Assembly (NCBI GenBank): GCA_051294905.1
Contig: CM119377.1
Coordinates: 2,914,001-2,978,000 of the forward strand
Source: Botryllus schlosseri
Taxonomy: Eukaryota
Length of the DNA stretch: 64,000 nucleotides
Reading direction: 5' to 3'
Shown here: positions 541 through 63,000 of the stretch, piece by piece
How the letters are laid out: each line of letters opens with the position of its first letter
Numbering within the stretch: the stretch's first letter is position 1
Notes under the pieces: model-generated
The model's input: only the letters and a program-made list of their open reading frames with translations
What the model was told of the DNA's origin: nothing
Database searches by the model: none
Translations under genes and position numbers: made by a program

Positions 541-560
541 AGTTCAAGTCTGTTCCCAAC

Positions 561-791
561 CTCCTCCGATAGCGGGCAAAGCTATGCTCTTCATCCCCAT
601 TCCGTCAGCCTGTCTCAATATTTTCAGCAATAGGTCCTCCATGGATTCATTCGTTTTTGGTATCGCCACATGAATGATCTTTTGACATTTCAAGTTGCCT
701 GCGTCGCTGTAACGGATATCGGCGTCTACGGTGCTCAATATGTTTCGAATATCTTCCCCAGCTCCGCTGAATACGGCACGAGACAATGGAC
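561..791 (-). CDS. Macrodomain exon (core, GPLSRAVFSGAG...IIHV...SIALPAIGG)
   Basis: 231 nt, phase 1-1, acceptor ttcgacAG, donor GTTGGG; typical macrodomain motifs. Confidence 0.9.
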
Positions 792-21700: not shown

Positions 21701-24700
21701 GTTGATGTTACTACCAGTTGCTGACGATTACCCCGGACGAGTATCGGCCGAAACTATTTGGGTTTATTTCAATATGAATATATCAATCAATTGCACAGAC
21801 ATGCCAATGCGTAATTGTTTGGAAAAGACAGTATTGGTATGTCTTGGTGTCGGACCATCATGAGATGTCGGTTAAACACCAGGACAATCACAGTCAATAA
21901 AGGTGGAATACATAGCACTATTTGCAAGCGGGCAACAGTAAACTTTCACAAAAACAATGCAGATGATTACCAGACCGACGATCATCTTCGTCACCTTCGA
22001 GACTAAACAAAGACAGTGATTCGTTGATTGAAGATAGACTGGCCATGGAGTCATGCCTTTGAATTCGGCTTCTTCGACCTTGATACTGCTGGTATCCGAC
22101 CTTCAACATACAAATCAATCAATCAATTTATTATTAACAATTTCATTATTCCAACACACCACAAGACTGTGATACAATGAAAAGATAGGAAGATATCGAA
22201 ATGACTTGGAGTAGACTTTGAAATCAGACACCCAACTGGGCCTAGGCGATGTAAAGAGGATTGCACACTGAATGAAAAGTAAAAAAGAGGATCACATAAA
22301 AAACAGGCAGAAAAAGAGGTGTCATGTGACGAGAGGCGAGGTCGTGGTCCAGTAAAATAAAGGGCTAACTGGTAAAAGCATGAATTACTCCAACAGCGGC
22401 GGGCCCCTTTCCAATGATGCATCTGTAGTTCTAAATATCCTTCTATTGGCAAAGGAAATTGGCCAAAAAGGCGCCGAGACACTGAAAACAAATTTCATTT
22501 CTAAATTTCGCTAATTGAATTGTTATGTTGGATAAAAGATTGCTTCAAGCCAAATTTGGATCCATTCCTACCAGTAGAAGCAGTGAAATTCCGAACTGGA
22601 ATTTCGACCCTTTTTGGAAATTATAGTATTTACAGTGGCATATTTCACTATCTCAAGGGAAACTTAAAATCTAATCAGTGAAATTGTGAAATTTTGAAAA
22701 ATAAGTTTTTTGATCAGACCATTCTATTACGTATCAACAATATTTTCCGGGAGGTTGAGCTTCAAAAGTACGCCAAGTGATATTGATGCAACAAAGGGTC
22801 AAAACATCCAACATCACATCATAGAAATTAATAATATCTCACGAAACAAAGTGACAAAAACGATATACTCACTGTTACGGCTCTGTAGCGATATACCAGG
22901 TCGAGCCTAACATTTTCAACCCTTGGCCTTTTGCCAATAATTGTTATGTTTTTCCTTGCGTTGATCTGGCCTCGAGTACCAGTTTTAATCTCCACCTTTT
23001 GAAAAATATGGTCAAGTTCAAAGAGTGTCATGATAAGGGCGCAATTGGAACTAGGGATGTCATGTCGTGTAGGTAAACGACAGGCAACAACATAATTTCA
23101 ATGGCCAAATGTTGCTAAAATACAGCCTAATATCAATCCAAGGAAGATATCACCGTCAAGTGTTTGAACTAAGCAAATTTATGCTCTCTCAGTGAAAAAC
23201 TACACAGAGTTGAGACTACTGTTTCTGAACTAAGATAATTTCACAGTAACACGTTAAGCATACCTCCGGATTGCCTGAATTTATCAATAGAAACGAGTAA
23301 ATGGCAACCCTGATCGACTAAAGAAAGTCAAGAAACCATCAAATTGATACATCACAACTCTTAAGTATTTTTTGGAAAAATCAGCCACAGTGATTTTTAG
23401 TGCGAAGCAGCTGTACATAATTGAGCTTTGGCGACTATAACTATTCAATCCTTTTAGTGACGAGAAAGTGCAGTGTTGCCATACACGATGTTGTGATTGC
23501 ATCAATTTGATATTTCTTCCGTCTTTTCCAATCATTTTTCCCATCTCCGAATCATCGATCTTCATGTCGAGAACGCAATAATTGTTCTGAAAATAATAAA
23601 GACCACCCTAGGCAAGACTCGAAGCGGCAAATTAAGCAGCAAATATTCGAATCACAGGTTGCCTATATGTCGTCGAGCGCTGAATAACCCTTATAACTGA
23701 AAAATCTATTGGCAATCTTTGAATTAATAGCTGTCTTGATATGTTAACTAAAAGAGAACTTTCATGAGCTGTGAAACATTTTGCAATATATCGGAGAGAC
23801 ATGAAATTCCAAAATATAAAACCTGTAGTGTTATGGAGTGTATGCATATAAAACCAATGGGATTTAGGAATAACGATTAAACACGACGCGAGTTCAAAAT
23901 TGGGCAGGTAACGAAATAACAGGAACGAGTTCGAAATCTGCAAGAGATTTATGTAATTTTTGTTGTGAAAGATAAAAATTCACAAGCAAATCATTTTCTC
24001 AGGAATTTCGATGATTAATTACATACATAAGTTAGAAGTTGTTTCACCACTTGGACATGGCCTTCCTTCAGTGGTGGGCCGTCACCTTTGATAACGAGCG
24101 CAGGAATTTGTCTTTCGACAGTTACAGTCACCTGGTGAAGAGAATATAGTGTTACGACTAAGGATAAAAACGGCATTTATTGGAAGTAGTGATAAGCTCG
24201 CGTAGTTGTCATAACGAGTACAGGAAATGAGTGTTGATCAAGTTAAACTTCCACTGTTTTATTTGCTGCCGAACGTAAGCTATCGATTTCAGTTTTTCTC
24301 ATCTTAACAATGGCATTAGTGATCCATAAAACTCGACTCAAATCACAATACTCGATTTGAAATCAAATAATCCAGAAACCAAATAATGGGAGAATGAATT
24401 TCAAAACAAACACACTAAAAAGGAAGCAGTCACATTGAAAAATTAGGTCGAAATTCAATCCCCTTACTTTCCACAAAATCCACATGCTCAAAACTCGCCA
24501 AACCTCAATAAACACATATCGAGTCAAGTGGGAAACACATGACAGATCAGTCAAAACGATCAGCGCCCGACTGAGTGTAAGCCTTGTGATTGTGAGTATC
24601 TCATGATAAAAATTTGTTGAAAATCGCATATTCAAAAGCACGAACTAGTACAAGTTGGCAAAACCTACTTGAGAAAAACTACCTCACTTACTGGACCACG

Positions 24701-27700
24701 TCTGAAAAGTGACATCAATGTTATCATCACGTAAAAAGAAAGCGTCACCTTGCTGTCGACCTTCTGTTGTATGTCCCCTAGCGCTTCCCGCGAATTCATC
24801 AAAACTAAAGCTTGCGAACCCGTCAGCGGAACAGAAATCGTCTGCATTTCGTTACGCAGTCGCCTCTGTCAAAATAGCAATATTTTGAATTTAGATTCAT
24901 TAAAAATATCTGGTTTCTTTGAAAACTCGAGGACGAATTTCCATTAACGAATTGCATATGGCAGAGCGCAAGTCGTTCTCTCAAAGTATACGTTGCCGAA
25001 TACTGCTGTTCATTTATTGATTGGAGTTACGATAGGGGGATTTGAATCATTGTAAAATCCGCGATACAGCATTAAATACACTGAATCCGTGACTTCTTCT
25101 ATAGTCACAATTTCATGTCGGAAAACCAGGTAGTATGAACCAAATTTTACAAATGATATCTCAACGTCACCGACACTAGAACTAAGTGCTGAATACAGAA
25201 CTAAAACAACAATGTGGTACCGTAATTTTTCAAATATAGTACTCCCCAATGTACAATAAGCACCCTTAAAATGGCGTGTAAATTCTGGGAAAAAGCCTGT
25301 ACCTGTGTATAGTACACACCCTACATTAGCAGTACATGAATAGTTATGTTTTAGTATTCAATGTCATTCTGTTTTGCATTACATAACGATAGTAGATAGC
25401 CGCCAAAGCCTGCGACACGATAGTTCAGGCCAGCGATATCTTGCGCACGAGGCCTATTACAGATGCGATTGCTCAGGCTAACGATTACGTCTTGCGCACC
25501 AGGCCTGTTGGAGATGAGACTGTAGTGTTCAGGCCATCAATTACATCTTGCGCACATGGCGATTGGCGTGTTGTATATGCGATTTTTCAGGCCTGTGGTT
25601 GACGTGAGGGTTGCCGCGCGCGCGTGCTGCAATCCATGACCTATTTTCGCTCACGTACAAACGGCAAACCGACTCGGAAGGATCGCTTGCTGTTGTGCAG
25701 CGCAGACGCTTCTTGCAAATTGGCAGCACGTACCACTGATAATACAAATTACTGTACGCAATGGCTGAATGCGATGCGCGAATAAAACAAACATGAAGAA
25801 CGGTGTGATTTCAAGTTATATTTAAATGGAGATTTTTTTCAAGGCTTGTTGTACCCATGCATAATGAGCACCCCCCGATTTTAGGACAAAAAATCGGTAA
25901 AATTTTGCGCATTATACATGGAAAATTACGGTACTTGACAAATACCTTGATTTGTAATTCCTCGCCCATCAATTTTTCAAGAGTTTCCACATTGTGTAAC
26001 GGCCCAGTGAAAATAGCGCTGTTATGTTTGAAATCTATTCTGACCTAAATGAAACAAGAATGTTGAAGAATGAGTAAAAACTAGGGTTACTTATTTAATC
26101 TAATCACTCGGACTCAGGTACTCGATTTGGCCCAGCCCTAGTATAGAGTAACAATGAGTGATGCTCGGAATACTCTACTTGAATCCCATGACTCCATTCG
26201 GAATCTGATCACTCAGGTGCTCGATTTTGTACAGCCCCAGTCACAACGCCACATACTAATTGCACTTACTTGAGAATATTGCGATCGCAATAGCGCCACA
26301 GCGCTCTTTACGTCCTCCTTCTCATGTGGGGCGAAACGTATCACAGTTTTGGAATTGCGATCCTTGAAATAACATATACTAAGCGATGCTGCTGAGAAGA
26401 CATGAGAAATTAGCAAAATTCTACATTCAAGTTAGACTTTTGGACAGTAAAGAACCCATTTTCAGTTTGCAGTACGTCACATAAATATATCTACAGTAAT
26501 TTCGGATGGATTACATGATTAAAAGGAATAATTCTTTGAACCGATAACAGACGATATAGATAATATTAGGATCTTGGTTGCTTTCACACCCTATTTAGCG
26601 TCCACTTGCAACGTAATAACGTGTAATAAATAAAATTATTACGTTTCAATTTGACACTAAATATGGTGTGAAAGCAACCAAGATCCTAATATTATTAAAA
26701 TGAGTATATCTACAAAACTTTAAAATGCATTTTAATGAAATATTCGTTTCCTAAATATATTTAAACTTGTGAAGCTTATCGAGCTGACACTCTCGTCAAG
26801 CTTTGAGTTATAATTTATCTATAACAGAAAATAAGTTAACGTTCGACATGACAAAGTTGCGTTTTAGATTACTTCAAAGCAAGGGGTAGGTTTAATCATG
26901 AAAAAAAAAACCGTTCAAGTAGAATGAGCCAGAAAAAAATCGACCAATAACTGTAGCATATTCGATACCCGATGACTAATCATTTTTTGAATATCTTCGA
27001 CAGCATCACGAACCCCTTCTTTAATGCCTTGCACTTTCACGTCACAGCTGTCAGAATTAGCTGAAGGCACCATGACGGAGACCTATCGTGACAAAGAGAA
27101 ATGGCTTGAAATATAGTCGGGATTATACTGCGTCATAATGTACCAGAGGTGGAACCTAGGTAAGCAAGCTATTACAGAATACTTTACCTTAAAACATTCT
27201 TGCAGTCTTTTGATGTTGCTTCCTTTAGTTCCAATAATGCAACCGTGCAGTTGTCTCTTGACAGGTATTACCTCACATGTGAACTTTGATTCCTGCAACA
27301 CAGCTATTAATTGAGATGAGTGCAATCGGATTACTACATATAACTGTGCATTCGGCTTCCTCGGGTTCTAGTAATATGCTGTTCAAAAAACGCGTTATCT
27401 AATTAGACTAATTAGAGTAAATGCAGGTAATCTAAATCTAATCTAATTTGTGAAATGTTTCTTTGCTCTGATTCTAAGCCTACTTAGGAAATGTTTCTAT
27501 GATCTAATTTGAATTCCAATCGAATTTCTGGTTCTCTTGACAATGCTACAGGAGAAGTTCCCAGTGACAAACAAGGCAAGTTTGCCCACCCACTGACAAT
27601 ATTGCCATAGCTCGGAAGACACTTGTGCGATTGGTGGAACCACGGATTGGTATCACATACTGTCTATAATTTCATGAAACTATGATGCAACTTTAGTATA

Positions 27701-30700
27701 AATACTCACATACTTGAACATAGGAAGTTTTTGGCATAGCGAGTGACTTACCACGTCAGCTACAACTCCGCGTATGAGATTCGCATATATGCCAACTTCA
27801 TACGGATGACCAGTAAGCACAATCTGATCCACGACACAGTTAAAAGCAACCTACAATACAAGAAAACCGGCTGACGTGAAAAAAATGACGGATTAAAAAG
27901 TACTCAAGTCCGATAGCTTCCTATCTGATTGGTATATCGCATAGTACAATGTGCAAGGAAGGTTCAATACAAGTGATGACCAGGTGTGTAAGCAGTTGAT
28001 CGCAGGGTGGAGAATTTAGACATTGCGACTAACGCAAAATGACTAATACCCTACGTGACTGCTGTGAAAAAACGAAAGGCAAATATACGGAAACAGTAGA
28101 ATCACCTCCATCTCAGGAAACTTGGGTTGTTTTTCTCTCAATGAATCCATGACCATTGGCTTCAGCCAGTCTTTCGCAGAGACGTAATCGTGCTCCCTTT
28201 TGACTACCTAACAAACGGATGACAGCAGCGTCAATTAAATCAATTTATTTCAAAGAGTGCAAACATTATAATGGGTGTGTCAAGTATACCTTGAAACTAC
28301 GTAAAGTGGGGCTATTTCCTTTTTTGAATGAAAAGATTGATAAATTCTAATCCATCACTGTTATACCAAGAATAAGTGAATCAAATAAATACGTATCATC
28401 AACATATTTTCATCCGAAGTATTTACATAGTCGGGTACATAATTGATTTCTCTCTCTCTCTCTCCCAAATTCTATCCACATCGACAAAAGCTCCCCATGA
28501 CCATCACCGATCAGTGTTCCCTATAAGCATCTCAAAAATTTATGTTTGACATGATCATCAACTGTGTCCAGCATGAAACTCGATAGAAGCCTTTAGGGTC
28601 AGGTCGGTGTAACGTAGGATTTTGGTTGAAGGTTAGGCGTTTAGCGTTAGAGTTAGGTTGGGGTATTGTACGATTATGGTTTAGGTTCAGAATGGTTCAT
28701 TACAATGTGGAACACCAAACATTTTGAGATGTTCATGGGGAGCCTTGGTGATGGTCAGGGGAAACACTTTTCTACGAGTATACGAATTGAGGAAGCACAC
28801 TAGACCGAAAGAGCCACTCAACCTCATTTAGAATGTCAGTCTTTGCCGTCTCTCTGTTGCCTGGCTTTCCTCTCACTGACATTCCATTCTTCTTTTTTGT
28901 GATCAGTACATCATTCTCTTTTTCCATCCGCTACACAGTAATTGAGAAGGGAATTGTGATGAATACATAGACTGGTAAAGAGCGTATTTTCAAAGGTATA
29001 CAAACTTTCATGAATTCTGTGCAAATCCTAGGCAGCCGATGCTGAGGTATGGTAAAGAATAGCTCTGAATTCTTCAATTCCTGCAATAAAACACAGATGT
29101 AGAAGTAACGTCGTACATTTCAACTCAAGTACTTTTGAAGTTGAAGTGCGCATACCAATGAAAAATGATTAATGACACCAGAAATAGGTGCAATTTTCTA
29201 AACTAAATCCAGTTACTCGGGGTTACCATACATCCTCTCTAAGGAGGATTTGACCTCCTTTTCCCAAAAATGAAAAATGTCCTCCAAGGACGCCAAAATG
29301 TCGTCCTTTTTTCAATTTGTCCACCTTGGACAGCCAAGCGATTGTACAGGCACACCTAAAAATCGCCGTAAATGCCGCAAAATATGGATTTTGATGGCAT
29401 ATATTTACGCAGCACAACAGTATTCCACTTAAAATTTCCAAATTACCCGTTTTCTTATATGATATTATAACTTTCATGATTTGTAAGAAGTGCCCTCTTT
29501 TCCCACAGTTACTGTGGTACAGGGATGATTTTTCCCCATTGGTACGACAATATCACTGAGAACAGCAATGCGAATGCAAACATAACCGCATACTAAACGG
29601 AATTTCAAGTCTAGGAAAGTAGTTTTGCTAAAAACGTAAGTAGCAGCGCACATATTCTAAAAACATAACCAAATAAGTAGGCGAAACCTAAAATTCACTG
29701 CCGAAAACAGAACTGCGATACAAATCATCTATTTGACACAAAATTCCGTTTTTACACAAATTTAATATTGCCACAAAACAGGAATGGATAGTAGACACAC
29801 ACCCATTCTTTGACAAACTTTTCCACAGCAGATTTGGCCTGAGATACTTGCTTCTTTTTACCGCGCAACAACACAGCGCAGTTGTTGGATTTCGGAGGAG
29901 TGACCTCCGCAAGAACGGTAAACTTGTTTTGCCACTCAAAAACTTTGCAGCAGTCCCCCACGGTCAAAACGGGATGAAGATTCTTCTTCACACTTATTCG
30001 AACTTCGACCTAGAATAAAGTACAGTGATTTGTAACTGTTGTTACTTATTAGGAATGTCACTTTATACGAGTGGTACACACTACTCAAGCACCACCAAGG
30101 TCTAGTGGCCGTACAGTAGACTCTTTTGCTAAACCTACTTGTAACAACGCCTGAAATATATTCGTATGTCTTGCGTATATCTGCGTCTTAAGAAGATCTC
30201 ACCAGGATACAGGATTCCAGGTTAAGTAGTCAGCCAGCTAAACCTATAATAATTTGGTTAGCTATACTTCTACTCCCAGGAAATATATACCCTATAACGT
30301 TGCATGGTACCTGAGCGATATCTTAAACGCTACTACGTTGCGTACGAGGACTTTCGACGTTGCCATCGAACTATCAATTTAGTAGCATAAAACTACTGAT
30401 TCGATAGAATCAGTAGACTCTTTTGCTAAACCTACTTGTAACAACGTCTGAAATATATTCGTATGTCTTGCGTACATCTGCGTCTTAAGAAGATCTCACC
30501 AGGATACAGGATTCCAGGTTAAGTAGTCAGCCAGCTAAACCTATAATACTTTGGTGAGCTATACTTCTACTCCCAGAAACAACATACCCTATAACGTTGC
30601 AGTATCTTACCATTTCAGCAACTTTATTCCTCAGAGACTCCGCCACAACATCTCCTTCTGACGGATGGCCCTCCAATATTACACGGTCAGGCATGCTTCC

Positions 30701-33700
30701 AGAATCAAGCTATCGAATAATAAGAATTCGGGGGAAGGATTATTACATCTACCTTGACAGGGATGGTATATGGATTGGATGAAAAAAATAAAAGATTCGA
30801 CCCAAAACTATCAAAACCGACGACAACATGCCTACATTCATGGGTTTGCAAGAGAGAAGTTGAAATAGTTAGGGTAACATACCAACATCACAGTAGGTTA
30901 TGATAGTCCTAATATACTTCTCATATGTACTTGTGTAATTTCTTTCTGTCTTCTGCTTGGAATTTTATTAGTAATTAGTGAAACTCTACTACTACTACTA
31001 CTACTACTATTTTGACCACACCTAATTACTACAGCAAGAGGCATGCAAAATGATGTCGAACCAATATCTAGTGGAAATAATTGTATATATATATAAAAAT
31101 ACAATAACTCATTGAAATAGTATGTCCTTGATCCAGCAGAAAATCCGGATGTGAATCAAAAGATTACAATACAACATCACAATTTCGAATGCGTCACCAA
31201 GCCACTGATGTCACAAGAATGATAATTCTAGCAGCAAAATTACCCGCAATTCAGGAAAATCCCGACGTTTCTGTTCCAAGAAGTCGGAAATGAGTGGTTT
31301 CATCCAGTCGGCAGCAGGGATAGAATACTGGCGATGGATAGAAACCTACGTAAAATGCACAACGGTAGATGGTTTGTGAGAGATTCAACTTTTAAATCAA
31401 TTTCCGGTATAGGTAGAGACATAGTCTCCAACGAATTTTACGACCTGATCCCAGCATTTGGGACAACCAACATTGACCGGCCTGTGTCTATTTGAAGCTG
31501 CAAATAACAAATCGGTTTACCTCAGCCAAAATATCTCTGTTTGTTTTCTGAACATCTGATTGTCTGCCCTTTATGACAACTCCATTCGCTACTTTTGAGA
31601 TCTGCACATTATTGTCTTTTTCTGATCTCTGAAAACATGATATGCAGCATAAAAGTCATTATTTGACTTAGAACTGTATTTAGTGAATGTGGGAAGTGAT
31701 TCCAACGCAAAATGTTGACACAAAGCAAGGTACAACACTGGAACATCGATTTGATTGCCCTGTGGTCCATGCTTTCAATTCCTGTGATTTGCAACTCACA
31801 GTACATGTCATCGAGAGCATATCTTAATTTGAATACTTGCTGGTCAACACTGCATATGTTTACTTTAATTTATTGACTGGACACTTTGACAACTCGTACT
31901 GCTGCCGCCATTATCACGATTGTGATGATTGGAACTGGTGTGGTGTCAATGTAAAAGTTAAGCTTAGTAACAAGCCACATTGACGTTGGCTATGTGCCCA
32001 AATGAAAGCAATGGTTAACAATACGATAGTATTCTTCAGAAATCAATTTCAACATGAACATGATTGGAATAAGAAATAATGACATGCGGTAGAGTAAACG
32101 ATATCGCGCGGTCTGAAAAGTAGGATTTCTGTGCTAGGGCTAGTCTAATGCAAGCAGGACCGCACAGACGAACAGGCAAGCTAGTGGATATCACATTGGT
32201 GCCAGTCAAGAGTGAACGGTTTAAAAAACTATGTCTCCCTTCAACAAAAATTATACATAATTCCGATGTTTCTGTGTAACGTAAAGAGGTTTGTAACCAA
32301 GTCCCAAGTCAATCTCACTTTGATAGTTTTGACTTGAATCGAATCGAGTCATTTTCAATTCACCGCCGAGTCAAGTCGGAGTCCAAGTCAGTGTGTAGAG
32401 CAGTGGTTCCGAACGTGGGCGATATCGCCCCCCAGGGGGTGATTTGGCGGCCTAGGGGGGCGAAAATGACGAAGGGGGCGATGACACGTTAAAACGGCTA
32501 TATTGGAGTCAAGTCGGAGAAATGACCTTTTTTTTTTCAATCAACCCACGGAAATTTCGTTGCAAAAGCGTAAAATTCGACAACGAGCTGAAAAGTTACC
32601 CTTTTTTTTTTTTAGTCAACCTGCCGATGATTACAGTTTGTATACCGATTTTTCGTTTCACGAAATCTGGGGTCGATGATCGGCGTCAAGCTTGAAAAGG
32701 GGGCGATGAGTTGAAAAAGGTTGGGAACCACTGGTGTAGAGGCCAGAGGGTCGAGTCCACTTCATAGCATTGAGACTCGAGTCCGAGTCCAAGTCATTGT
32801 GTTAACTGTTCTGTTTTGAGTTCAATCCGGTCTCTCTCTCTCTCTCTCTCTCTTCTAACAGTTTCTGGCCCTATTTTCCAAGTATCAGGAATGGTAGACG
32901 AAGTACCAATAATGTGGTGACTTTACTATTCTTCGAAGTTACAATGTCTGTTTTAGCCGTCCTAGTCCGAGTCATGTACAAAGACTCGAGTACAGGTCGA
33001 GTCAATACACAAATTGACTCGAGTCAAGTCGAGTCACCAAAAAATTGTGACTCGAGTCATTACAACCCTGAACGTAAATGAAGCGTGTTTCATGGAGCAA
33101 ACATTTATTGATTTTTACCAGAGCAAGAAATTTGGGGAGCTCAATACCTTTTACAGTGTTCCAATACTATTTACAGGTATGACAAAAGATTCATCACGAG
33201 GAGCTCGAGTGCGAGCCACAAGAATTGTCAAACCATCACACACGATTTGGAAATACATGAAATTGAAAAGCATTCGTCATGTAATGAATGTAATCAAACC
33301 TATTTCACTGACCTTGATGAAATCATCTTTAAGTCTATGTAATCGCTGCAAAGGCACGTGTAAAGTGGTGTCGTTTTTCCCCTGAAAGCAATATATCTGC
33401 TGGCAACTGCACATACTATACAGTACATATTGTACATACCAATTGCTGGATAAAGCTTAATATTTCAGATTTTGCATGAAATAGAGCATTGTTCTCCCCT
33501 CTGATGAAAACTTCACAGCTGCTTGAATCAGGAGCAGGTATCTCCATAACAACTCCATATTTCTGCTGCCATTCATTAACTTTGGAACCGTTTTTCCCGA
33601 TTAGAGCACCGTGCAAGTTTTTCTTCACATGAATGCGGAATTCACCCTTAAAAATGAGAATGTTTACATAGTGTTCATGAATTATCATATTTACTTTTTT

Positions 33701-36700
33701 AAGAGGTGCAAGGCAGTAGGGATTCTTTACCGGATTAAATTTGATCCGTTTTGGGGATTATAAAGCAGCATTTCGCTTGCATTTTAAAAGTTTTAGTATA
33801 TTTTTCAAACAATAAATTATGAGTGGGTTGGTCGTTAGGGGCAACCACTAGAATGACATCTGCTGAATCGACAATTTCCGGCTCAACCTATATTAACGAA
33901 AAGAGAGGTAGTATGAAACTTTTGGTATGTAATTGTAAAATGTAATGTAAAAAATTCCCGTTGAAGGGATAATATGGGTCACAAAATCTATTACACAATG
34001 ATGAGAAGGCGAACACTTTTATAAACGAGCAGATCTGATCCTGAACATGATAGAAATACATCAGTGGACCTAAAATACTATTTATTGTATTTTCTACTAA
34101 TTGCAAGATTGTATTGACCAGCTATATTACATTGGTTGGCCAATGGTCAGTTATGCCGAATGCTATCCCATGGGATGACTGTGAATGCGCTTAATATCTA
34201 GGGTTACGCAGTCATTTGAAAAATTATCATTGTCACAGTTACTGAATGAAAACAGAAGTTTAGATTGGACAATTTTACATATTCTGTGATGTTACGCCAT
34301 GAGTTCCAACTAAAATCGCAGGTCTGATAGTCAAACTCGCATGCTTATTTTGCCACTACATAGCTTTGCGTCATAAAAGCATGCGGCGGCTTTCATCGTT
34401 GTGAAAATCAACTCCAGAAGTCTAACTTCAGCAAAATGATCCAAGATACCGTCGACCTCAAACTGAAACGCACTATGACAGTGGTTCCCCACCAGTTTGG
34501 CAAAAAGACATGCCTTTAAAGGTCCAAGACAGAAACGTTTAAACTATCACGAATGCGGACCGTATTACACTTTAGCAAAGTACCAATGGCCACTTCCGTC
34601 TCAATTATTCAACACCAGGAGTGCTGTTATCTAGTCAGTAAATAAAAAATGAATGATTCGCCACTTTCCGTTGTGGTAACATTGCGAAAAACTTGGTATG
34701 TTGTCTAACAATAAATAATCAGGCCGACTTTTGACTTGAGTTGATAATTTGAAATATTTTTCACAGTCAGACAGATTTTAACTTGAAAAATAAAGGTAAA
34801 CACTTTCATAAGTTATGTAGGACTCGGCATGACTTTTTAGGGCTTACGAGTAATTTGGTTGAGAGGTCCAACAAAACCGTCTTGTGAGCTGCACTTTTAG
34901 CACACTTGGGCGAGATTTAAACAAATCACAAGGGAATGGTACGAATAGGGAAGATTTCAAATGGCATTTATACATACTTCTAGCTACAAATCAGCCAAAA
35001 GGAACAAACATAAAATAACGAAAAAATAACCTTCCTTTAAAATCATAAATTTGGGAACCACTGCAATATGAGATCATTTTATGGCTATAAAATTGTCCAA
35101 AATTTACCGGTGTGAATAATCAAACCAATTCAACGGTTACAAGTTGTCTGCTAGTGCAGGAGTAAAGTCCTACTCGCCTATGCATCAGAATAAAGCTTGT
35201 ATTGTCAATACTAACCAGTTGTGCAAGAAAACCTTCTATTTCAAACACTGCATTCTGAAGATATGCAACAGGCCCAGTAATAAGAATGACTCCTTTTATG
35301 TCATTATCAGCAAGCCTTGGGTCCTTGGGCAATATCTGGATACCAACTCCATATCTCCTCTGCCAGTCATTGACTTTTCCGGTTAAGGCGTAGCGAAAAG
35401 GTTTTTTCACACAAATTCTTCTTTCTCCCTGAACGTGATTGAAGTATGTTCATCAGTACGAAATACAAAAGTCATAACTTGGATCAAAACAGATAACTCT
35501 AATCATAAATTTAAGGTGTAGTCTGTGATCATAAGTAGAATAGCTTTTGAAATACATTGTTGTATGGGCCAGTTGATAAACACCTTCCGTGGTGTTAGAA
35601 AACTTGTGCAGTACACTTTGCTCAACATTTCCTGCAGCTGGTGAAGTACACTTATCCTGAGTAAGATACATTTATATATCGTAATGCCTTGAATACAATA
35701 GTAGATAGGTAACATAATTGTTATTTCTGAGTATCAACGATTAATATTTGCATGAGATACAGGTCTGAAAAAGGACTCGCATAAGACACAATTTTCCAAT
35801 ATTGGTCTTGAATTCAGAGAAATCAAAAACAAATATATTTCAAGATGATGTTACAACTTAGCAATAACACCCATCTCTTGCATATGTAACCGCAACATCA
35901 GGAAATCTGAAAATTCACAATTTCTATCGATAGAATGAAAATAATGACATTTGGTTCACGTTGTGATTCAAATTTGCCCTTGTGATTTCAATAATAGATG
36001 TGAAGAAATATATTCCATTACTGCTCATTATCTTCATAAAACTGAGTCACGCAAATGCCCAAGCAATCATGTGCAGACGATCTGCATTAGTAAGATAGCT
36101 AAAACAAATTAACAGCCCTACAAAATAAAGGGATGCGACTGAATAAATATGATCTATAAAATAAAGTGTTTAGACAAAATAAAAGAGCATACATAACATA
36201 AAAAATCGACATGACGGAACTCACAAAAACTCGAAGAACTTCTTCAATCTGATTGCCAACTGGATGCACAGCAGCTGGGTGTCCGCGAATGCATATACTA
36301 CCATTGTCCCAAGATATTTCAATCTATAACATTATCAAAGATGAAGTAAGTTGGCAACTAGATAACAATGTTATACACTTGTAAATTCTATCTCAGTAAA
36401 TAAGAGGAAATTGCAATCAGGTAGTTACATATGCAGATATGAAAGCTGGCTGATACAAACCAAAACATTATTGTGGATTACCAAAATAGAACTAACTTGC
36501 TCTAAATCAGGGGTTCCCAACATATAGACCATGAGCCTTTTTCAGGGGGCGGCAGCATGAAAATATTTAACATAACTATATCAAAATAAATAAATTTTAA
36601 TTCAATAAAAATAAAGTGAACTGTTGAAGCTACAGGGCTAAGCAAGTTATACCCTAAGCGTAATGAAATCGTTGCAGTTAACATCAACATATTGCTGTAA

Positions 36701-39700
36701 ATGCGAGTTCCAACTATGTTACTTCAAATGCAATAAATTATTAGCACATTGTCTTGGATATCCAGTATGACATGGACTGTTTCTTTCCACCAGCAGAGTA
36801 GAACAAGCAACACATTAACTGCATATGTAATAACTAATTAATGTGCTATCATATCTATTTTGTATGCTATTTATATCATTTCATTTATATATATCATTAT
36901 AACGTTTCTTAATTTATCAAGTGGTCGAAAAAATAGGGAAGGGCATCGTTCTTTTAAAATTGTCGAAGGGGACCATGGCGTAAAACATGTTGGGAGCCCT
37001 TGCTCTAAATTATTTCACAAATATATCCGGAAGAATAACGGTAAACTTGAAATACGAATCCATGCAGTCATGGAAAATACTCAATTAAACATACTTCAGG
37101 AAAAGACCTTTTCGCTTCCTCAATTTTGAGACGGCATTCATCAAAGACCCACTTGGGAGCGATATAATTCCTTACGTCGACTCGAGAAATCTGCGGAGAT
37201 TTGGTCAGTTGTTAGGTGAACTCAAAACAGACGACGGTAGAAGAATGCAAGATTAGAGTTACAAGTTCAACTTGAAATGACTGAATTTACAAGTGACCGG
37301 TCAACAAATAAGTCGTGTGCTAAAGCAATTGTTTATCACTATGTCACAACTCAACACATGGAATCACAATGCTTTCCAGCATAAGGATGAAAATTATTTT
37401 TCTGATGCCCACGTAGGAGAAATTTGTCACGCACAAATAGGAGACTATATGTAGACAAATCGCCATGCATTATCACGTAAATACAACCAATTCCCAAGAA
37501 ATAGATAGGACACCAGATAGGACTTTCATGATACACTGTGATTGTGTGAGAAATTCATAATAACTGCTACGCTGTTATACTATACTCCCGTATTCACATG
37601 AATATACATTATACATTACATATACCCATCAGATTTTGTGATACAATTGATGATACACGATGTTCTTGTACGAATGTAGGTGCCACTGTGATTGTGGCTA
37701 ATTGGGAAGAACGTCAAAGCGTTTGCAGGAACGCATAAATCAGAAGTCCTTAGATTTATGAGAACGCGCGCATCACGCTTTGTGAAAAGCTCACACTTGA
37801 CTCATCCGATCAAGCTTGATGCGGAGAGATCAAAGGTCATAAATTCTGCTAATGGCAACCATCTGTTGGATAGGCTAATCCCGTTTGTGCGAATAATTGT
37901 CGAGACGACAAATTTCGCATCATCGGCGGTGGACACTGGCATTTGTGTGCCTTGAAGTCGACTTTTATCAAAATATACCAACCAAGGCTGTGTCAATAAA
38001 AGGAGTTTGTGTATCATCTAAAAATAGTACATTGAACTCTCTCTTATTCGAAATTTCATGCCGGGGAGTGGTGACGTCATATTTTGTGATATGTTGTTAA
38101 TATCCAATGATCTTTCCAATTCTCTACTAGTTGCTGACAATTACCGAATCAGCCGAAAATATTCGGGTTCATTTCAATATGAATATTACTATTCAATTGG
38201 ATATACATTTGCGAGCCATTCCACAATTGTCATAGATTGAGTCTGAGCCAAGTCAAATCAGTGAATCGATTGAAGTCCTAACTCAAGTCCTCTCAACACT
38301 GGTGGAAGAACTACCAACAATTATCATTATCTGTGTCATATTAACTCACCTCATCCAAGATCAATTTCATTCCTGTTTGTATGCGAGCTGGTGGTCCGTC
38401 AAGCACAAGAAGTCCCGCTCCTTTCCATTTCACAGATACTCCGGCAGTACATCTAATATGCTAGACAGTAGACAGCGTATCAAGGTGGGATATATGTTGA
38501 GTGATGTACATTCGAACAAACCTGAAGGAAGTCGCCAGGAACTCGGTACAAGAGCGACGGATTGATACGCAGCTCATTATTGACTTCTTTCAGCTTGAAA
38601 GAAATAGAGCGTTAACGGCAGAAACATAACAAAGCCTCGAAAAGTCAAGAGCACACCAAGAAATGGGTCTTCACAGGTCATTTCTTACCGGAGGTACAAG
38701 TACCGATGCGGTACATTTCATGACAAATGCTACAATTTACACCAGGGGTAATCAAATCGGGGTACGAGACACGCGAGCAACGTCATTTTTCCGGTACTGG
38801 TACAATTTTCTGGGACAGCGACCTTAGGAATTAACGGTATATCGAGATTTAAGTTTGAGATCCTCAAATTATAGATTTCTAACATAAGGATGGATGCGCT
38901 GCAGTCGCCACGCTCGAATGCCACGAGAAGTCTGCTGAAGAGCCGGCTAAAAGCAGCATATTGGCAGTTGTAGAGCCGGCAATAATAATACTGGTCTTAA
39001 TCGAAAGCTAGTGTCACGCTGATTTCGAAAATACAAGTTTAAGTTTGATCAGGGCAATGTAACCAGCATGAAATAGTCGTCAACGTATTAAAATCCGTCG
39101 TTTAAAACAATCGCTCGACGCAATTAGCTATTGGTATTGTCATTGCGTTGTCACGCAATTATTCGGAACAATCGGCTTTGATAGCTAGTTCGGAGTGGTT
39201 TCATTGCTCTGACCAGATGTTGATTTGTATTTTCGGGGTCAGTGCGACACTAGCTTTCGATTAGGACCAGTATTATTAAATTTGAGCGCTCGGGTCGCTA
39301 GCTATAGGACTACCAATTATGCTGGTTTTAGCCGGCTCATCAGTAGACCTCTCCAGGTATTCAAGCGTGACGGCCGGGTCGCGCATCTATCTGCAGGTTG
39401 GTAATCTATATTCAAATCCAGCGTTTATTAAGGCTTAATAGCACCATGCTTTTGCCTCATGTATGTTATCCGTAATGACTTACTGTTTCTCTACTGTTGT
39501 TGTGGTAATGAGAGTAACTGCGAAGTCTATACTGTAGATCTCGGGGTAGTTCTATCAGAACCAGTAACTTCTGCTGATTATGATGGCTAATTGATTAGCG
39601 TTATGGGAATCTCCAGTGTTTTGCTATGTACAAGTACAATGATGAGCAGGCTATAGGCTACTTTATGGGTCTGGCCTAATATGGCAAAGTCGCATCCAGC

Positions 39701-42700
39701 AACGTCGACAATGTGTGAAGAGTCTTTACGCAACAGACTTACTCGTGTAGTAGCACCAAGTTCATCTATCGCAGTGGAATGATGTTTGAAAGTGTAAATA
39801 TAGAGTGGGGATGTGTGTTTCAATTGCGCACACTTTATGCAAAATCATTTCCGATGTATACAGAAAATAATTCGTGAGGGGTACGCATTGGAAAAAGTTT
39901 GAGAACCCCTGATTTACTTGTTTCGTTGATCATAAAATCTGATATAAATTGGTGCGGTAAAAGAAATTTGGGCCAAGTCCGACATCATGACCCAATGTCT
40001 GAGAACCACAATGAAAGCTGTGAATATGTACCTGTTCGTTTATTGCCAGCTTTGCCTTTTTGATATCATCTCTTCTTCCCGTCAGCTTCAAATAATTCTG
40101 TCTGCACCAACCCACGTTAACCCCAGTCCGGGCGGACACATTCTGCAATTGGGACAACGTCTAGTAACTATATGTGTCACAAACATGAGTAAAATGCTTA
40201 TTACCTGCAAAACTTCATGAGAAATTTTACGGCAATTGTCAGGTTTTATGTACATTTCCTTGGACTCCATCTTAACAAATATGTAAAATACATTCGTTGT
40301 AAACTTTGTTACAGCAACTAAACACACAATGATTCTCTTGCACTGAAATAATAAAATATAAAGCAGGAAGAGTACAGATTCAAGTCACTATGCATTAGCA
40401 AACATGATACATTCTTGTTACAACTTACAGCTTCTGACAGACAAAATTGACCTCAGTTGAAAAATAATTATCAAGCATCTGGCATTTCACTCATATCAGC
40501 TCGCGTACCAAATATCAATATTGTCAGCGTCAACAAGATTCAGAACACACAAAAGCAAACATAAATTCAACTACATAGCGCAGGTCACCTTATACAAAAA
40601 TAAATAACAACGCCACACAAGATATCTGCCGTTTGAGTTGAGTACTCAAAAGCGATACAAAATAGGAAGTTGCTGCTGACCAGTTAGCCTACAGACATCA
40701 AAATGAAGAGAAAATATTATTATGACATAAGATGTGCTTGCTACTTGGAATCATTGAAGTGTAGAGAATCAACAAGCCCATTCTTCACACTAAATGGTTT
40801 CAGTATTGTGCGAGCATTGTGTAATTTAGTTTTAAATGTATGCCCACCTTGAATTTTCAATTCATTAGGGCGCTGCAATTGCTAATAAGTTCACAGAGCG
40901 CAACATTTACAAGAATAGTTTGGGTAGAGGTTGGTAGGTAACCCGGTTATGAGTATGAGAGTATCCAACAACATGACTCTACTAATGTACTATAACTTTG
41001 TCACACATTACAACACTTCTCTCGCTTCATACCTAGTTAAACGTGTGTCTTGGGGATGTGTTTTTAATGTTACTGGATCCTTGATAAAATTGCTAGGTTA
41101 CCTGAAAAACGGTCACAACAAATTTGTCTCAATCCCCGCCTGTAGAAGCATTGCTATTAGAGGAGTACAGTTTGGATGTATTAAATTAAAATAAATAGAT
41201 TTTTTTTTAATTGTTTGGTTGTCTAAAAAACGTGCATAACAAATTTGGCTCAATTCCGATCCGTTGAACAGTGGTTTTCAAACATTTTTAGAGACGCCCC
41301 CCTTGATGCTAGTGAAAAATTTTGCGCGCCCCTATCGCCATATATAACAAAATTAAAAAGAGCATCCATAATGTTTGCAATCGCAACACATAGTTTTATG
41401 GTATCGAATGCTGAGACTGATGAGAGACTTACCAAATATGAAGTTCGGATTATAAACAGAGCAATAATTACGAGCTGGAGGTAAATCGCGCAGGCGATGA
41501 AAAAGCTTTCAATTGAATATTTTGTCAAAAATAATCATGCGAAGTGGTTGCACATAACATTTAGATATTTTAGCGAGTTTAGTGTCTAATCCCTTCTATT
41601 ACCATACTTGAGCTTGGCTGAACGGGGTGCTAAATAAAAAACCAATGGAGAGGCCAGCACGCCACTCAAACTTGGCACTTCGTCACGGAACAAACAATTT
41701 TCTTTAACGGTCGCAGGTGTTCGGCAAGAGAATAAATAATTTAAACGCATACTTTGTGCTGCCATAAAATGCGCTTCTTAAGAGTGTCATTTACAAAAAA
41801 AAAGTGTCCTTATTGAGTATATTAGGAGGGGCTACTTTAACGTTATTGTAAGCCACTTCGATTTAAATCCACGTTTTTTAGATTAAAACATATTATACAT
41901 GGCTTATGACACAACCTTATAAAGATATAACTTATTCCTACATGAATTTATGTCATTCAAGTTTCTACTCACTCTGCACTGGTGCTTGACAGACAAGCCC
42001 TAAAAGCGTCATCAAACAGCTACAAACAATCAAACATTCACCAGTTACTCTTAATTCAGATAATAATAAGATCTCGGTTGCTTTCACACCTTATTTAACG
42101 TCCACTTGCAAAGTAATAATTATATTTATTACACGAGCTTTCGGAGCGCCGCTCCTTCATCAGGTGTTAAAGTGAAAGTCAGAGACATCTTTTGATCGAC
42201 GCAAAGTCCGGTTTCAGTCAAAATTCAGAATCAGTGTTGGGATGGTACGGCGCAATCAAGACATTTAAATCGTAATTTAATGAAGATTACTGCCTTTGTT
42301 GAAACCTGGAAGTTTCAGCACAAATCAAACTCATTCCGAGTTCAAGGAACCATTTTCTCTCAGGCGGCTTCACGCCCCCAGTTTGAGAACCACTGCCATA
42401 GAATCTAACGTATTTGAGAATAAATTGAAGATTTGAAAAAAATAGTATTTACGGCGGAAAGTTCTATCATTATTTATTGTTTTCTACTGCTACTATTTTC
42501 TATTATATTATTTATTAAATCCGAAACTTTCTCCTCTAATGCTTCTCCTGTACAGGTTGGAAATGAGCCAGATTTTGTGTGCTGCGTTTTTTTAGGCACA
42601 CTATTAATTTATCCAATACCCAGTATAATTTGAAAAGAAATAGTTAATTTAGAGCAGCCCCAGTATGTATCTATCATCTCAGCATCAGACTCATGCACGC

Positions 42701-45700
42701 CTACTCCTATTGCAGATTTATATGCGAGTAATCCAGTCAATATCATGGCAAAGTCTCATTCAATATGTAATGCCAACAAAATCCAAGCTAACCTGGTTCA
42801 CTTTCCCTTTCATCTGATGTATCTTCTGTTCCACATCTTTCACTCGACCACTGACCGATATCGTTAATACCCCTTTCAAGCTCGAGAGCAGATGCACATC
42901 CACGGCAGCATCATTATGTTCAGCAGGGTCAAACGTATCAACGGTCTGAGTACGCACGGTGAATTGTGAGAAGAATTCGTCTAGGATTCTCTCGCATTCC
43001 TTGCGCCAATTTCCTGCAGCCTGCAAGATAATCATATGATATGAATCATTACGAAGTCGCGTGAATGCAAAAAAATGATAAACAAAAATTCAAGTATAAC
43101 AAAATAAAAAGACACACAAGTGTTATTTCCAAAAATGAAGTTTATTTTAGTGAAATGACGATCAGCGATACGGCCGTTACATCGTCATGTCAGCTGGTAA
43201 CATCATACAGTCATATATGTTATAAATGCAAATATATCTTGCAAAAAGTATGATGAATTAATATGTATAACATCAAGTGCGAACGCAATACGCATATTAC
43301 ATTATTATTAGGGCAAGTTTTTGTTACATTCAAATCGGTGGAAAGTGGCATTTATGGACAAGTTCCTTGAAATTATAAGGGTACGAGATACTCAAATCGT
43401 TCCGTATCCAAGGCACTCTAACACACTCAGTGTTGGCGACTTCAACAAAAATTGACCCAGTGAAAATATTAATTTCGTCGGTCTAGCCCAGTGGTTCCCA
43501 ACGTGGGCGATATCACCCCCCAGGGGGCGATTCCGCGGTCTAGGGGGGCGAAAATAACGAAGGGGGCGATAGGGGGGCGAAAGCGGACGAAGGGGGCGAT
43601 AGGGGTGAAAACAACGAAGGGGGCAATAGGGGGGCGATGGCGCGTTAAAACGGCTATATTGGAGTAGGGACCGTAACTACCGCACCCCAAACCCCCCAAT
43701 TGGTGGTGGGGGGCCCGAAATCATAGGAAGCCCAAAATTATTTTGTGAATTAACATGAATGATAGAGTAATTTTTTAGAAATTCATTCGACTTTTTCAAA
43801 AAATTTTCGCGCGGCGCGCAATTTAATATTTTCATGTATCTTGATGTTGGGGTCCCCGCCACCCAACAAAAATACGCATAATTTATGGAAATGGGAGGCT
43901 TCGGCGTCGGCCATTACTGCGCCACGACGCACCAAGACATATGAAGTTAGAGGCCATGTAACATGCGACTCCGAGAAGTGTGCCAGAACGATCAGCAGCG
44001 AGAAGACCTTGGCCGAAAAGAAATGCCCTTGTGCTGACCGAAAACTTCGATGTATTTACATATATGTTAAATTGTCCATAGGCGCCTTAATGGCTGGCGT
44101 CGAATGTTTCTGTCCTGGCGACCTTAACCCTACAGGACAAATGCCATCCCCACAAGGAAAGAATTATTCGCCAGTAAAGAAATACCAATATATGAAATCA
44201 TGTGAGTCTTTTAGTTTGGTACGTTTTGACGATTTCCATATCTTCTGACATAGCAGATATAGGAGGTCACGAAATAGCATCATGTAAAGAAGTCAATATC
44301 AACGATTCCGCCCGAAGATGTTTAATTATTATTTAGGGGTCCTACCTTTTTCAACATACCACATCGACCATATTGACCAATTCAAACATGAATTATATAA
44401 AATTGTCGCGCCTCGCCCGTTTAGGCGAAATACCGTGACTCACCAAACAGTACATGAAATAGGGTATAGCTGATATGTAGCGACAAAAAGCCCACTGGCT
44501 GAGGGGGGTCTGGGGTTTGGTTTATCACCCTATGCAGCCAAAGACCAACGTTTTTTCGGGTAGAGGGGGGAGCTGACGAAGTGCTGTTTTTCGGTTCCCA
44601 ACTGGGGGGCGATGATCGGTGTGGAGCTTCAAAAGGGGGCGATGAGTCGGAAAAGGTTGGGAACCACCGGTCTAGCCTGAATGCACGTCAAATCAGAAAC
44701 GACCTCCAATTTAAACTACAGTGAAATAATCAAGTGATCTATTTACATATAGTGCCAAATATTTCTACTAAAATGTTAGTTTCATGAAAAATCGAAAAGA
44801 AAACTTGCAAAAAGTTGCAATATAAGATTCATTCAAACAGCTTAATGCACCATACTACGTAATTTTTGAGTATTTGGATAGCTGCCAAAAGCTGTAAAAA
44901 ATGTCGCAAAAGTTGCAAAAACTTGCCCTAATTATTATCTTACGTGTACATGTACGCGAATTTACTGCTGTCAATCAAACTAGATGAAACAAGTAACAAG
45001 TAAGGTACCTATACAAATAACTTTAACAAGTAAAAAAATAATTAAAAAATAAGAAGCAAACGACAACAAATTTACTGTTATATTTTTCATGAACTGTAAC
45101 AGTTGAGCTAAGAGGAAAATTCATACTGGTGTTGAGCTTAAAGTAGAACAGACATAAAAATTTTGACTCGTCAGAGTTGCAAATTTTTGTGTGCAGATTG
45201 GCCAGAGTCGTACTCATTATAATATTTATTGCATTGAGTTTGTACTTTTTCTTATCTGCGTGAGTAGGGTTCGAACTTGTGGAATTTACTGACGGTATCA
45301 ATGGACCTCGACTAGAGAGATTGTTGATCTACAATATGAAAAACAATTATCACTTTTTCCAAAATATAGCTTCAACGAGCTACAATAATTAGATAAATGT
45401 AACGTCGAGCTGGTGTCAAAGTCGCAAATGTTGGCAAGCAAGAGTATTAGACTCTCGTAATTCAAGTAATCTGTGGTGCAATTCACTAGCCAGAAGCTTG
45501 TTCTCGAGGCAATGTTAGGATTCCAGTGTTTACAAAATGAAAGATATCATGAAATTGTGATGTCACAAGAATCTGGACCAGCGCAGAAATGTGGCTTTCA
45601 GTTCATTATAGTAGGGAAAATGTTATGTAATTATTTATGGTAGGTTACAAAGTTGGATGGGTCTTACGTTCAGCGTGGACTGCATTGAAACCCCACTTTG

Positions 45701-61930: not shown

Positions 61931-63000
61931 ATATAGACAGACACCTTCGATTGTTTTCAGAGCCGGAGCTGGAGCCGGAGCAGTGGTAATAATACGGCTC
62001 CGGAGCTGGAGCTGGAGCTAATGTATGATAGAAGAAAGCTCCGGAGCTGGAGCAATGCAAATTTACGGCTGCTCCAAAGCCCTGGTCGGAACGGATATTT
62101 TAGTCATCAACATCCCAAAGTTTGCGGTCAAGCTAATCAAATTTTCGGTTGGTTTTGCAAGTTCACAATAAATTACCTGGCTAATTTATTTCTTGATATT
62201 ATAACTAATTTCGATAATTACCTCGCAGGGCAGTCAAAACCTCGCTGGTTGGTCGCCCCTGATTTGGTTGGTCCGCATGCTTGCCTGAAATATCGCGTGC
62301 ACCAGGCCAGGACTGAAATCGTCACTGGCTTGAACTATCGATTCTATACAGCAGGTCAGGCGTGATATCGTCACTAGCCTGAACTACCGAGTCTACAACA
62401 AGGCCAGACTTGATATCGTCACTAGCCTGAACTATCGAGTCTACTCTACGTCTACAGCAGTCCTCGCACTATAGAGTACTCGCACGATTTGCCTGCTATC
62501 TCAATTTATGCCATTGCTGTGTCATACTGGCTTAAGACTGACAACGTGAAATTGAATAACTTTGGCTCTGCGCAATTGGTCGCAATTCGCAAACCGACTA
62601 GAAGGGGCGCCAAAAGATGAGACATGCCTGAATCACTTGAAATCGATGCCATTACAGAACAGATTCCACAGCAGACTATATCATTTTGATTGGTGAAAAA
62701 GTTCGTCGTCACGTAGGTTGCGAAATGCGTATTCAATTGTTCGCGCGCGTGTTGGTGAATAGTGAATATTTGGTACCGTATTGAAGCGAGATAGAGGAAT
62801 CGCTAATTGACGGCACCGCCGGACTTGCTGGCAAGCTTACGCGTACTGATACGCGTATCTTCGTCAACACGCGGACCCTTGTCTTATCCATGTATTATCG
62901 TCATTGACGCATGTACTTAACCCTAATAAATTAATGCTACCTTGGTAAATTTCAAACAATTTGAAACCCCTTCCTTTTTCGTATTGCCACCCCGTGTAAA

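Follow-up and report, generated by a model that had tools for sequence, protein, structure and literature searches.

Evidence for a tandem array of about twelve KH-fold units, grown by exon-block duplication, near a macrodomain exon in Botryllus schlosseri

How does a long run of small, similar exons come to lie near a macrodomain, and do the two belong to the same protein? These questions are raised by a 64,000-nucleotide (nt) stretch of the Botryllus schlosseri genome (NCBI GenBank assembly GCA_051294905.1, contig CM119377.1, positions 2,914,001 to 2,978,000 of the forward strand), which we call the window and within which all positions below are counted. The window is about 40% GC and eukaryotic, and carries a long multi-exon coding region on its minus strand. 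The gene reads from high to low coordinates, because a macrodomain exon lies at 553-792. An earlier note, made from the sequence alone, had proposed that much of this region encodes a large array of KH units inside a PARP14-like protein. Here, we find that paralogy among the exons, profile matches and predicted folds support reading the region as a tandem array of about twelve type I KH-fold domains. The joint explanation that we favor, on balance, is that this array grew by block duplication and was seeded from, and possibly spliced to, an adjacent KH-macrodomain gene. The KH array and its super-repeat are the supported parts of this picture; the PARP14 context and the single-protein reading are weaker, and we regard them as partly supported.

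Exon classes and block duplication

Exons were called by a splice-aware scan of stop-free minus-strand segments, after which the sequence was read directly. Between 25946 and 40270 on the minus strand, this yields 21 exons, all AG/GT-bounded, stop-free and of phase 0-0, which together encode 785 amino acids (aa) with an isoelectric point (pI) of 9.3. At least 17 open exons, nearly all of phase 0-0 and falling into size classes, had been noticed before, and that description holds for the fuller set. The classes are A (213, 207 and 207 nt, plus a split member of 105 + 114 nt), B (66, 72, 69 and 75 nt), C (111, 111, 108 and 108 nt), D (96, 102 and 102 nt) and E (99, 99 and 99 nt), with a weak tail of 93 + 99 nt; the sizes first listed were right, with the fourth B (69 nt) and the second 102-nt D missed. 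In gene order, the exons run B0-C0; B1-C1-D1-E1; A1; A2-B2-C2-D2-E2; A3-B3-C3-D3-E3; A4a-A4b; and two tail exons. As a strand control, the same scanner was applied to the region on both strands, and it returned 12 strong candidate loci on the minus strand versus 0 on the plus strand. It also recovers two exons further downstream, 24749-24865 and 24027-24131, which are independently confirmed by a cross-species protein, P0002, described below.

The paralogy among these exons is far beyond chance. When 1107 minus-strand open segments are compared by blastp, A2 matches A3 (43% over 70 aa, E=7e-17), A1 (E=6e-8) and A4 (E=2e-4), and D2 matches D3 (E=1e-8), C2 matches C3 (E=2e-6) and E2 matches E3 (E=3e-4). 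Global alignments with shuffle controls give the closest pairs as A2-A3 (z 18.6), C2-C3 (39% identity, z 10.3), D2-D3 (z 9.2), E2-E3 (z 8.7) and B2-B3 (z 4.4). A1 is closest to A2 (z 12.2), and B1-C1-D1-E1 and B0-C0 are far more diverged (z 1-5). Because the closest pair joins the same two blocks in all five classes, the five-exon, three-KH block A-B-C-D-E was duplicated en bloc, which bears out the earlier idea of an expansion driven by exon duplication. The two clearest copies are A2-E2 (33646-30611, block alpha) and A3-E3 (30009-27752, block beta); the rest of the array consists of an older and weaker set, B1-C1-D1-E1(-A1) (z 3-5), an isolated B0-C0 pair, and A4 with the weak tail. These parts are what had been described as about three A-(B+C)-(D+E) cycles. 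Identity between the paralogous blocks is only 26-41%, so the duplication is old, or the copies evolve fast, and it is not recent. Hidden Markov models (HMMs) of the classes, run against all open segments, found no members besides their seeds and the split A4.

The array opens with B0 (40205-40270, 66 nt), an ATG-initial exon that encodes the first half of a KH unit, BC0, and has weak class similarity (B0-B1, z 3.3). The second half is encoded by C0 (40032-40142, 111 nt; C0-C1, z 5.0), which has weak matches to KH_N4BP1_1st and KH_PARP14_3. B1 (38522-38593, 72 nt) and C1 (38350-38460, 111 nt) are placed by the splice scan and class alignment, and are followed by D1 (37095-37190, 96 nt; D1-D2, z 4.1), E1 (36225-36323, 99 nt), which carries a GHP motif, and A1 (35216-35428, 213 nt), a single-exon KH unit that lacks GxxG and has no Pfam match of its own. 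Block alpha opens with the canonical KH_1 unit A2 (33440-33646, 207 nt; GKNG), continues with B2 (33313-33381, 69 nt), 58 nt past A2, with C2 (31521-31628, 108 nt) and D2 (31244-31345, 102 nt), and closes with E2 (30611-30709, 99 nt). Block beta opens with A3 (29803-30009, 207 nt), a KH unit without GxxG that shows weak matches to KH_PARP14_6, KH_N4BP1 and KH_Vigilin in the Pfam scan. B3 (29006-29080, 75 nt) is again placed by splice scan and class alignment, and C3 (28823-28930, 108 nt), D3 (28106-28207, 102 nt) and E3 (27752-27850, 99 nt), which closes the block, by their paralogy to C2, D2 and E2. A split KH_1 unit comes next, its first half, with GTKG, in A4a (27188-27292, 105 nt) and its second half in A4b (26969-27082, 114 nt; A-class HMM, E=1e-3). 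Both tail exons are uncertain. X4 (26270-26362, 93 nt) has a good donor, an AAG acceptor and phase 0-0, and is probably the first half of a diverged D+E-like unit; E4 (25946-26044, 99 nt) is E-like in size and pattern, with weak similarity (z <=2.6).

The introns of the array vary widely in length. Three of the four B+C units have a very short internal intron (40143-40204, 62 nt; 38461-38521, 61 nt; 28931-29005, 75 nt), and the A2-to-B2 intron spans 58 nt (33382-33439). The B2-C2 intron (31629-33312) spans 1684 nt and holds repeats that are also present at 43.4-43.7 kilobases (kb) and at 11.1 kb. A tandem duplication of about 300-380 base pairs (29939-30322 versus 30382-30709, 79-96% identity in translation) lies mostly within the E2-A3 intron and overlaps the edges of both exons.

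How might such an array have begun? It would have grown by en-bloc duplication of the five-exon block, with the older copies upstream and partly lost or diverged. Its seed was probably the KH_1 unit A5 of the adjacent KH-macrodomain gene, at 23.5 kb, which is encoded by A5a (23485-23586; KH_1, GKDG) and A5b (22873-22995; second half of the unit). This suggestion is based on A4, which lies at the 3′ end of the array, has the exact phase-0 intron site of A5 and is its closest relative within the array: the two introns (27083-27187 in A4; 22996-23484 in A5) each fall exactly 11 residues past the second G of GxxG. A1-A3 are unsplit. The common position implies that the intron is ancestral to both units or, alternatively, that A1-A3 have lost it, and, taken with the relatedness of A4 and A5, it shows common ancestry, though not necessarily one transcript.

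KH identity and the downstream macrodomain part

The A units qualify as bona fide KH_1 domains, either by Pfam or by clear homology to A2. Against a Pfam KH_1 cutoff of 21.5 bits, A2 scores 48.1 bits (E=1e-12) and A4 32.2 bits (in the open segment of A4a); A1 and A3 qualify by homology to A2, whose best sequence matches among solved structures (PDB) are vigilin KH1 and KH6. Each A unit comprises about 70 aa and, in the unsplit case, one exon; B+C and D+E units are two-exon units of about 60 and 66 aa, respectively. Unsplit counterparts of B+C are found in P0002 (residues 617-648, E=6e-6) and in the window at 6242-6406. Overall, about 12 units are counted in the 785 aa, within the range of 11-13 first estimated. 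Nucleic-acid binding by KH domains depends on a GxxG loop that joins alpha1 to alpha2. The canonical loop holds GxxG in just two of the twelve, A2 (GKNG) and A4 (GTKG), the same two that had been singled out earlier; the GKPG of B3+C3 lies outside that loop. Charge differs by class, with basic A and B+C units (pI 8.1-9.9) and acidic D+E units (pI 5.2-6.1).

For the two-exon units, the best structural match points to type I KH folds in the predicted models. One unit per class (B2+C2 and D2+E2) was folded with AlphaFold2, with paralogous exons as alignment rows. The B2+C2 model (predicted local distance difference test score, pLDDT, 91.3; predicted template modeling score 0.75) has the beta-alpha-alpha-beta-beta-alpha topology of type I KH domains. 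Its top Foldseek matches among solved structures are FUBP1 KH2, PNPase KH, BICC1 KH, KSRP, MEX3C and vigilin (probability about 1.0, template modeling scores 0.6-0.76), and KH domains dominate its matches among reviewed-UniProt models as well. For the D2+E2 model (pLDDT 80.8), KH domains are again the best matches, and its best VIA match is a canonical KH domain with a root-mean-square deviation of 1.7 A.

The part of the locus downstream of the array was recognized through P0002. When 1.84 billion representatives were searched by phmmer with the 12.3-kb exon, there were only 3 matches, among them one long relative, P0002. This protein of 956 aa derives from a transcript-like Logan contig of 3.3 kb (SRR32906214). 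Its alignment to the window is colinear, running from 24856 to 553 with 25-58% identity, and the protein includes an orthologue of the KH_1 unit A5 (z 13), a unit of B+C type (588-652) and one macrodomain. With P0002 as query, tblastn identifies the first exon of this part (24749-24865, minus strand, 117 nt, phase 0-0), which has a usable acceptor and an internal Met; the second (24027-24131, minus strand, 105 nt), also found by the splice scan; and the macrodomain exon (553-792, minus strand; E=4e-23; Pfam Macro, 30.1 bits), which is 58% identical to the macrodomain of P0002. Word-indexed homologue searches with whole P0002 and with its macrodomain region recovered P0002 itself and nothing else. 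The P0002 contig starts with a Nextera adapter remnant, and in one frame of its leader (L001:25-224) there is a resemblance to the beta-beta part of a C-type KH half, with stops interrupting every frame. We considered this 5′ leader as a set of decayed array exons and rejected the idea: tblastx and blastn gave nothing significant, and its class-HMM score of 1.9 is reached by about 1% of shuffles.

PARP14 is the nearest known family for this downstream part, which is a candidate member of it. The closest relatives of the macrodomain, typed on that of P0002 and not on the window's own exon, are PARP15 (3e-16) and PARP14 (5e-15 to 2e-13), ahead of macroH2A, PARP9 and MacroD. In the ESM-Atlas, the clusters nearest to P0002 consist of PARP14-type fragments (score 0.84), which we take only as a lead. 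The window contains one macrodomain region, within which it ends (553-792), and no ART or WWE domain. No RRM family was matched in the segments scanned, which do not cover the window exhaustively. None of the PARP14-specific Pfam KH families reaches its cutoff: KH_PARP14_1 scores 15.9 bits (cutoff 21), and KH_PARP14_8, _6 and _3 score 14.0, 15.1 and 12.8 bits (cutoffs 27-28). The PARP14-like setting proposed in the earlier note is thus only partly supported: the phase-compatible downstream part encodes a KH_1 unit and a macrodomain, whose counterpart in P0002 is of the PARP14/15 type.

A second repeat is seen downstream of the array, on the minus strand, as three modules of about 130 aa, each made of a piece of about 55 aa and a W-type exon of about 85 aa (20822-20992+16016-16267; 14854-15021+12216-12467; 10618-10806+7909-8160). 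The W-type exons at 12.3 and 8.0 kb are blastp paralogues; the one at 16.1 kb is not among them. A further W-type exon lies upstream of the array (42793-43020, minus strand, 228 nt, phase 0-0), its likeness being recognized by eye from a W...C motif and not detected by blastp. The ESM-Atlas clusters nearest to the W-type unit are KH families (score 0.89, again a lead only). An intact 430-aa open reading frame (18725-20014, minus strand) lies within an intron of the downstream part.

One gene or several

Might the B+C and D+E units be something other than KH domains? They could be unrelated small alpha/beta modules that share a beta-alpha-beta-beta-alpha arrangement, which would leave a true KH count of four; we consider this very improbable, although several results do weigh against our reading of them. 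Profile searches, which the earlier note had suggested as a check, place A2 and A4 above the KH_1 cutoff and find nothing significant in Pfam for B+C or D+E, whether as single exons or joined (B2+C2, B3+C3, D2+E2). Local hhalign comparisons of B+C and D+E with the A class find the correct register and are not significant (P 0.01-0.1), and their profiles have no significant match to PDB sequences, D+E having no KH match at all. AlphaFold, which the note had suggested for the spliced product, gives for single units the full KH topology of B2+C2 and a D2+E2 model that has one long helix where KH domains have alpha1-GxxG-alpha2 and that scores similarly against two non-KH folds, the phosphoglucosamine mutase C-terminal domain and secretin N1 domains. 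The Foldseek E-values of the models are weak (6e-3 to 1e-2), and the underlying alignments hold only 6-7 paralogue rows. Yet KH domains dominate both PDB match lists, and all six elements of the KH topology are present in the confident B+C model. The sub-threshold sequence matches are enriched for KH families (KH_Vigilin, KH_N4BP1_1st, KH_PARP14_3) and, among PDB sequences, those of B+C are rich in KH proteins (BICC1, FUBP1/2, vigilin, KSRP, Rrp4). Moreover, the order in which B+C and D+E units alternate with the bona fide KH_1 units is fixed. A different concern is that the exons are real and are used as cassettes or are partly decaying, in which case the mature proteins would hold fewer KH units, and B0-C0, B1-E1 and the tail may be relics. 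We think this rather unlikely. It is true that all 21 exons are symmetric, and since all are phase 0-0, any subset would splice in frame. The older members are much more diverged (z 1-5), the AAG acceptors of B0, B1, X4 and A2 are weak, and the tail exons X4 and E4 have no significant class similarity in shuffle-controlled alignments, retaining only E-like size and secondary-structure pattern. However, 21 of 21 exons retain an open frame together with both splice sites, although copies share just 26-45% identity, and the model of B2+C2 is very confident. The best KH_1 unit, A2, is itself preceded by an AAG acceptor, so AAG sites seem functional in this gene.

Whether the array belongs to the same gene as the macrodomain is a closer question. 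We lean slightly towards a single gene, in which the array would be spliced to the downstream part in at least some isoforms, giving one very long KH scaffold that ends in a macrodomain. All exons lie on the same strand with compatible phases throughout, a usable acceptor is present at 24865, and only 1080 nt separate the last tail exon from the exon that begins there. KH-like exons occupy the same strand from about 43 kb to 5 kb, including a position upstream of B0 (42793-43020), and the 64 kb hold a single macrodomain region. It is also possible, if less probable, that two or more adjacent genes are present: a KH-only gene running from the B0 ATG (40270) to near A4b or the tail, and a separate KH-macrodomain gene starting with the 24865 exon. 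The first of these would encode a stand-alone multi-KH protein of about 700-785 aa, born by partial tandem duplication of its neighbor's 5′ end. Several observations favor separate genes or otherwise weigh against a single one. The initial Met of P0002 falls at codon 1 of the 24749-24865 exon, past the entire array, of which P0002 has no counterpart; its leader has stops in every frame, including in frame upstream of its ATG. In the corresponding exon of the window, codon 7 is a Met whose -3 position is a purine; the exon could be internal or could hold a start at that codon. The B0 ATG would make a good independent start, being the first ATG after an in-frame stop, with A at -3 and G at +4 in a strong Kozak context and a strong acceptor 72 nt upstream. 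Read-through of A4b meets a stop after 17 codons and an ATTAAA 21 nt further on (26891-26917), which could be an alternative 3′ end. P0002 also lacks a WWE or ART domain and ends about 130 aa after its single macrodomain, searches of protein collections matched no transcript product of this organism, and the array junctions are predicted from sequence. Set against the two-gene alternative, the 1080-nt gap between E4 and the 24865 exon, whose AATAAA lies about 150 nt before that exon, leaves little room for a promoter and leader exon, and the 24865 exon has a normal acceptor and phase 0-0. The KH-like exon upstream of B0 does not suit a gene starting at B0. Polyadenylation-like hexamers occur once per 820 nt in the window, and therefore the ATTAAA after A4b is weak evidence. 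Finally, P0002 shows only 25-58% identity, and its true orthologue may be another paralogue. Polyadenylation hexamers and Kozak contexts were both tried as evidence of gene boundaries and set aside as too frequent or too weak.

A larger version of the single-gene reading is doubtful: every KH-like exon of this strand between about 43 kb (perhaps 46 kb) and 5 kb would be joined with the macrodomain in one transcript encoding more than 2,000 aa. Its protein would have roughly 20-25 KH folds, above the 14-15 of vigilin, and would end in a macrodomain akin to the PARP14/15 type, possibly without ART. If true, such a protein would be a giant ADP-ribose-reading RNA or ribonucleoprotein scaffold made from two nested exon-block super-repeats. 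On the reading that we favor, single-stranded RNA or DNA would be bound by the GxxG units A2 and A4 and perhaps by other basic A and B+C units. The D+E units, acidic and devoid of GxxG, may act as spacers or protein-contact modules, in line with what has been described for KH-like domains in PARP14, PARP9 and DTX3L. Reading or removal of ADP-ribose on the scaffold's cargo would fall to the macrodomain, and an immune role for the whole is conceivable.

Known KH arrays and other features of the window

In human PARP14, 3 RRMs, 8 type I KH domains and 3 macrodomains are combined with WWE and ART domains (PMC10450202, PMC13224862). The present locus resembles it in having a run of type I KH folds that are mostly diverged and recognizable mainly by predicted structure, with a macrodomain akin to the PARP14/15 type (typed via P0002, 58% identical) encoded on that strand too. 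It differs in having at least 12 KH units within about 14 kb, versus 8 in PARP14, and probably more than 20 KH-like units across the whole window. The three-KH, five-exon super-repeat is a further difference, as are one macrodomain region instead of three, the absence of RRM, WWE and ART from what was seen in the window, and the absence of any KH_PARP14_n family at the Pfam cutoff. Multiple PARP14-like paralogues have been mentioned for lancelet and sponges (PMC13224862), and our literature search found no description of an expanded KH array in a PARP14-like protein.

The locus also invites comparison with vigilin. Vigilin (HDLBP; Scp160 in yeast) has 14-15 KH domains, to our knowledge the largest KH array described. 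Both arrays are long and closely packed, with almost no linkers. Among solved structures, the A2 sequence is nearest to vigilin KH1 and KH6, and the D+E model has vigilin KH4, 8, 12, 13 and 14 near the top of its structural matches. Most vigilin KH units keep GxxG, whereas here it is kept in 2 of 12. KH_Vigilin matches are sub-threshold here (12.7-13.6 bits versus a cutoff of 27; E 0.05-0.1), most units are not KH_1 by profile, a macrodomain lies nearby, and the exon-block repeat structure is different. Diverged KH units are also present within the vigilin family, in Scp160 (cited in PMC10450202).

A third point of comparison is provided by the KH-like domains of DTX3L, PARP9 and the PARP14 C-terminus, which were defined by AlphaFold2 and Foldseek via PDB entries 6Y2D, 6GY4, 1X4N, 1ZTG and 2ANR (PMC11080071). 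The two-exon units modeled here were likewise found as KH folds without GxxG by the same two programs, through the same PDB entries. Some are also acidic (D+E, pI 5.2-6.1), suggesting protein-protein over nucleic-acid contacts. Unlike those domains, the A and B+C units are basic (pI 8-10), and there is no RING-DTC or ART context. One caveat to a PARP14-type assignment by structure is that PARP14, PARP9 and DTX3L are not among the top 30 reviewed-UniProt matches of either model. The KH arrays in PARP14, PARP9 and DTX3L were recognized only in 2023-24, and the roles proposed for them include RNA recognition and protein-protein assembly. The present locus offers a natural test case, in which the KH part has been multiplied by exon-block duplication, only two units have GxxG, and basic units alternate with acidic ones. 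It could reveal which types of KH domain can be dispensed with, by what route such arrays expand, and whether macrodomain proteins without ART use KH scaffolds.

An Rfam scan of the window gave no matches. At 46623-46874, on the minus strand, an open segment carries a C-terminal motif that, by eye, is like the hAT transposase dimerization region. A plus-strand repeat occurs in three copies (4105-4983, 37692-38100 and 62965-63811), one of them in the C1-D1 intron; its open frames contain a CDCGYVG motif and may represent fragments of GIY-YIG or Penelope-like elements.

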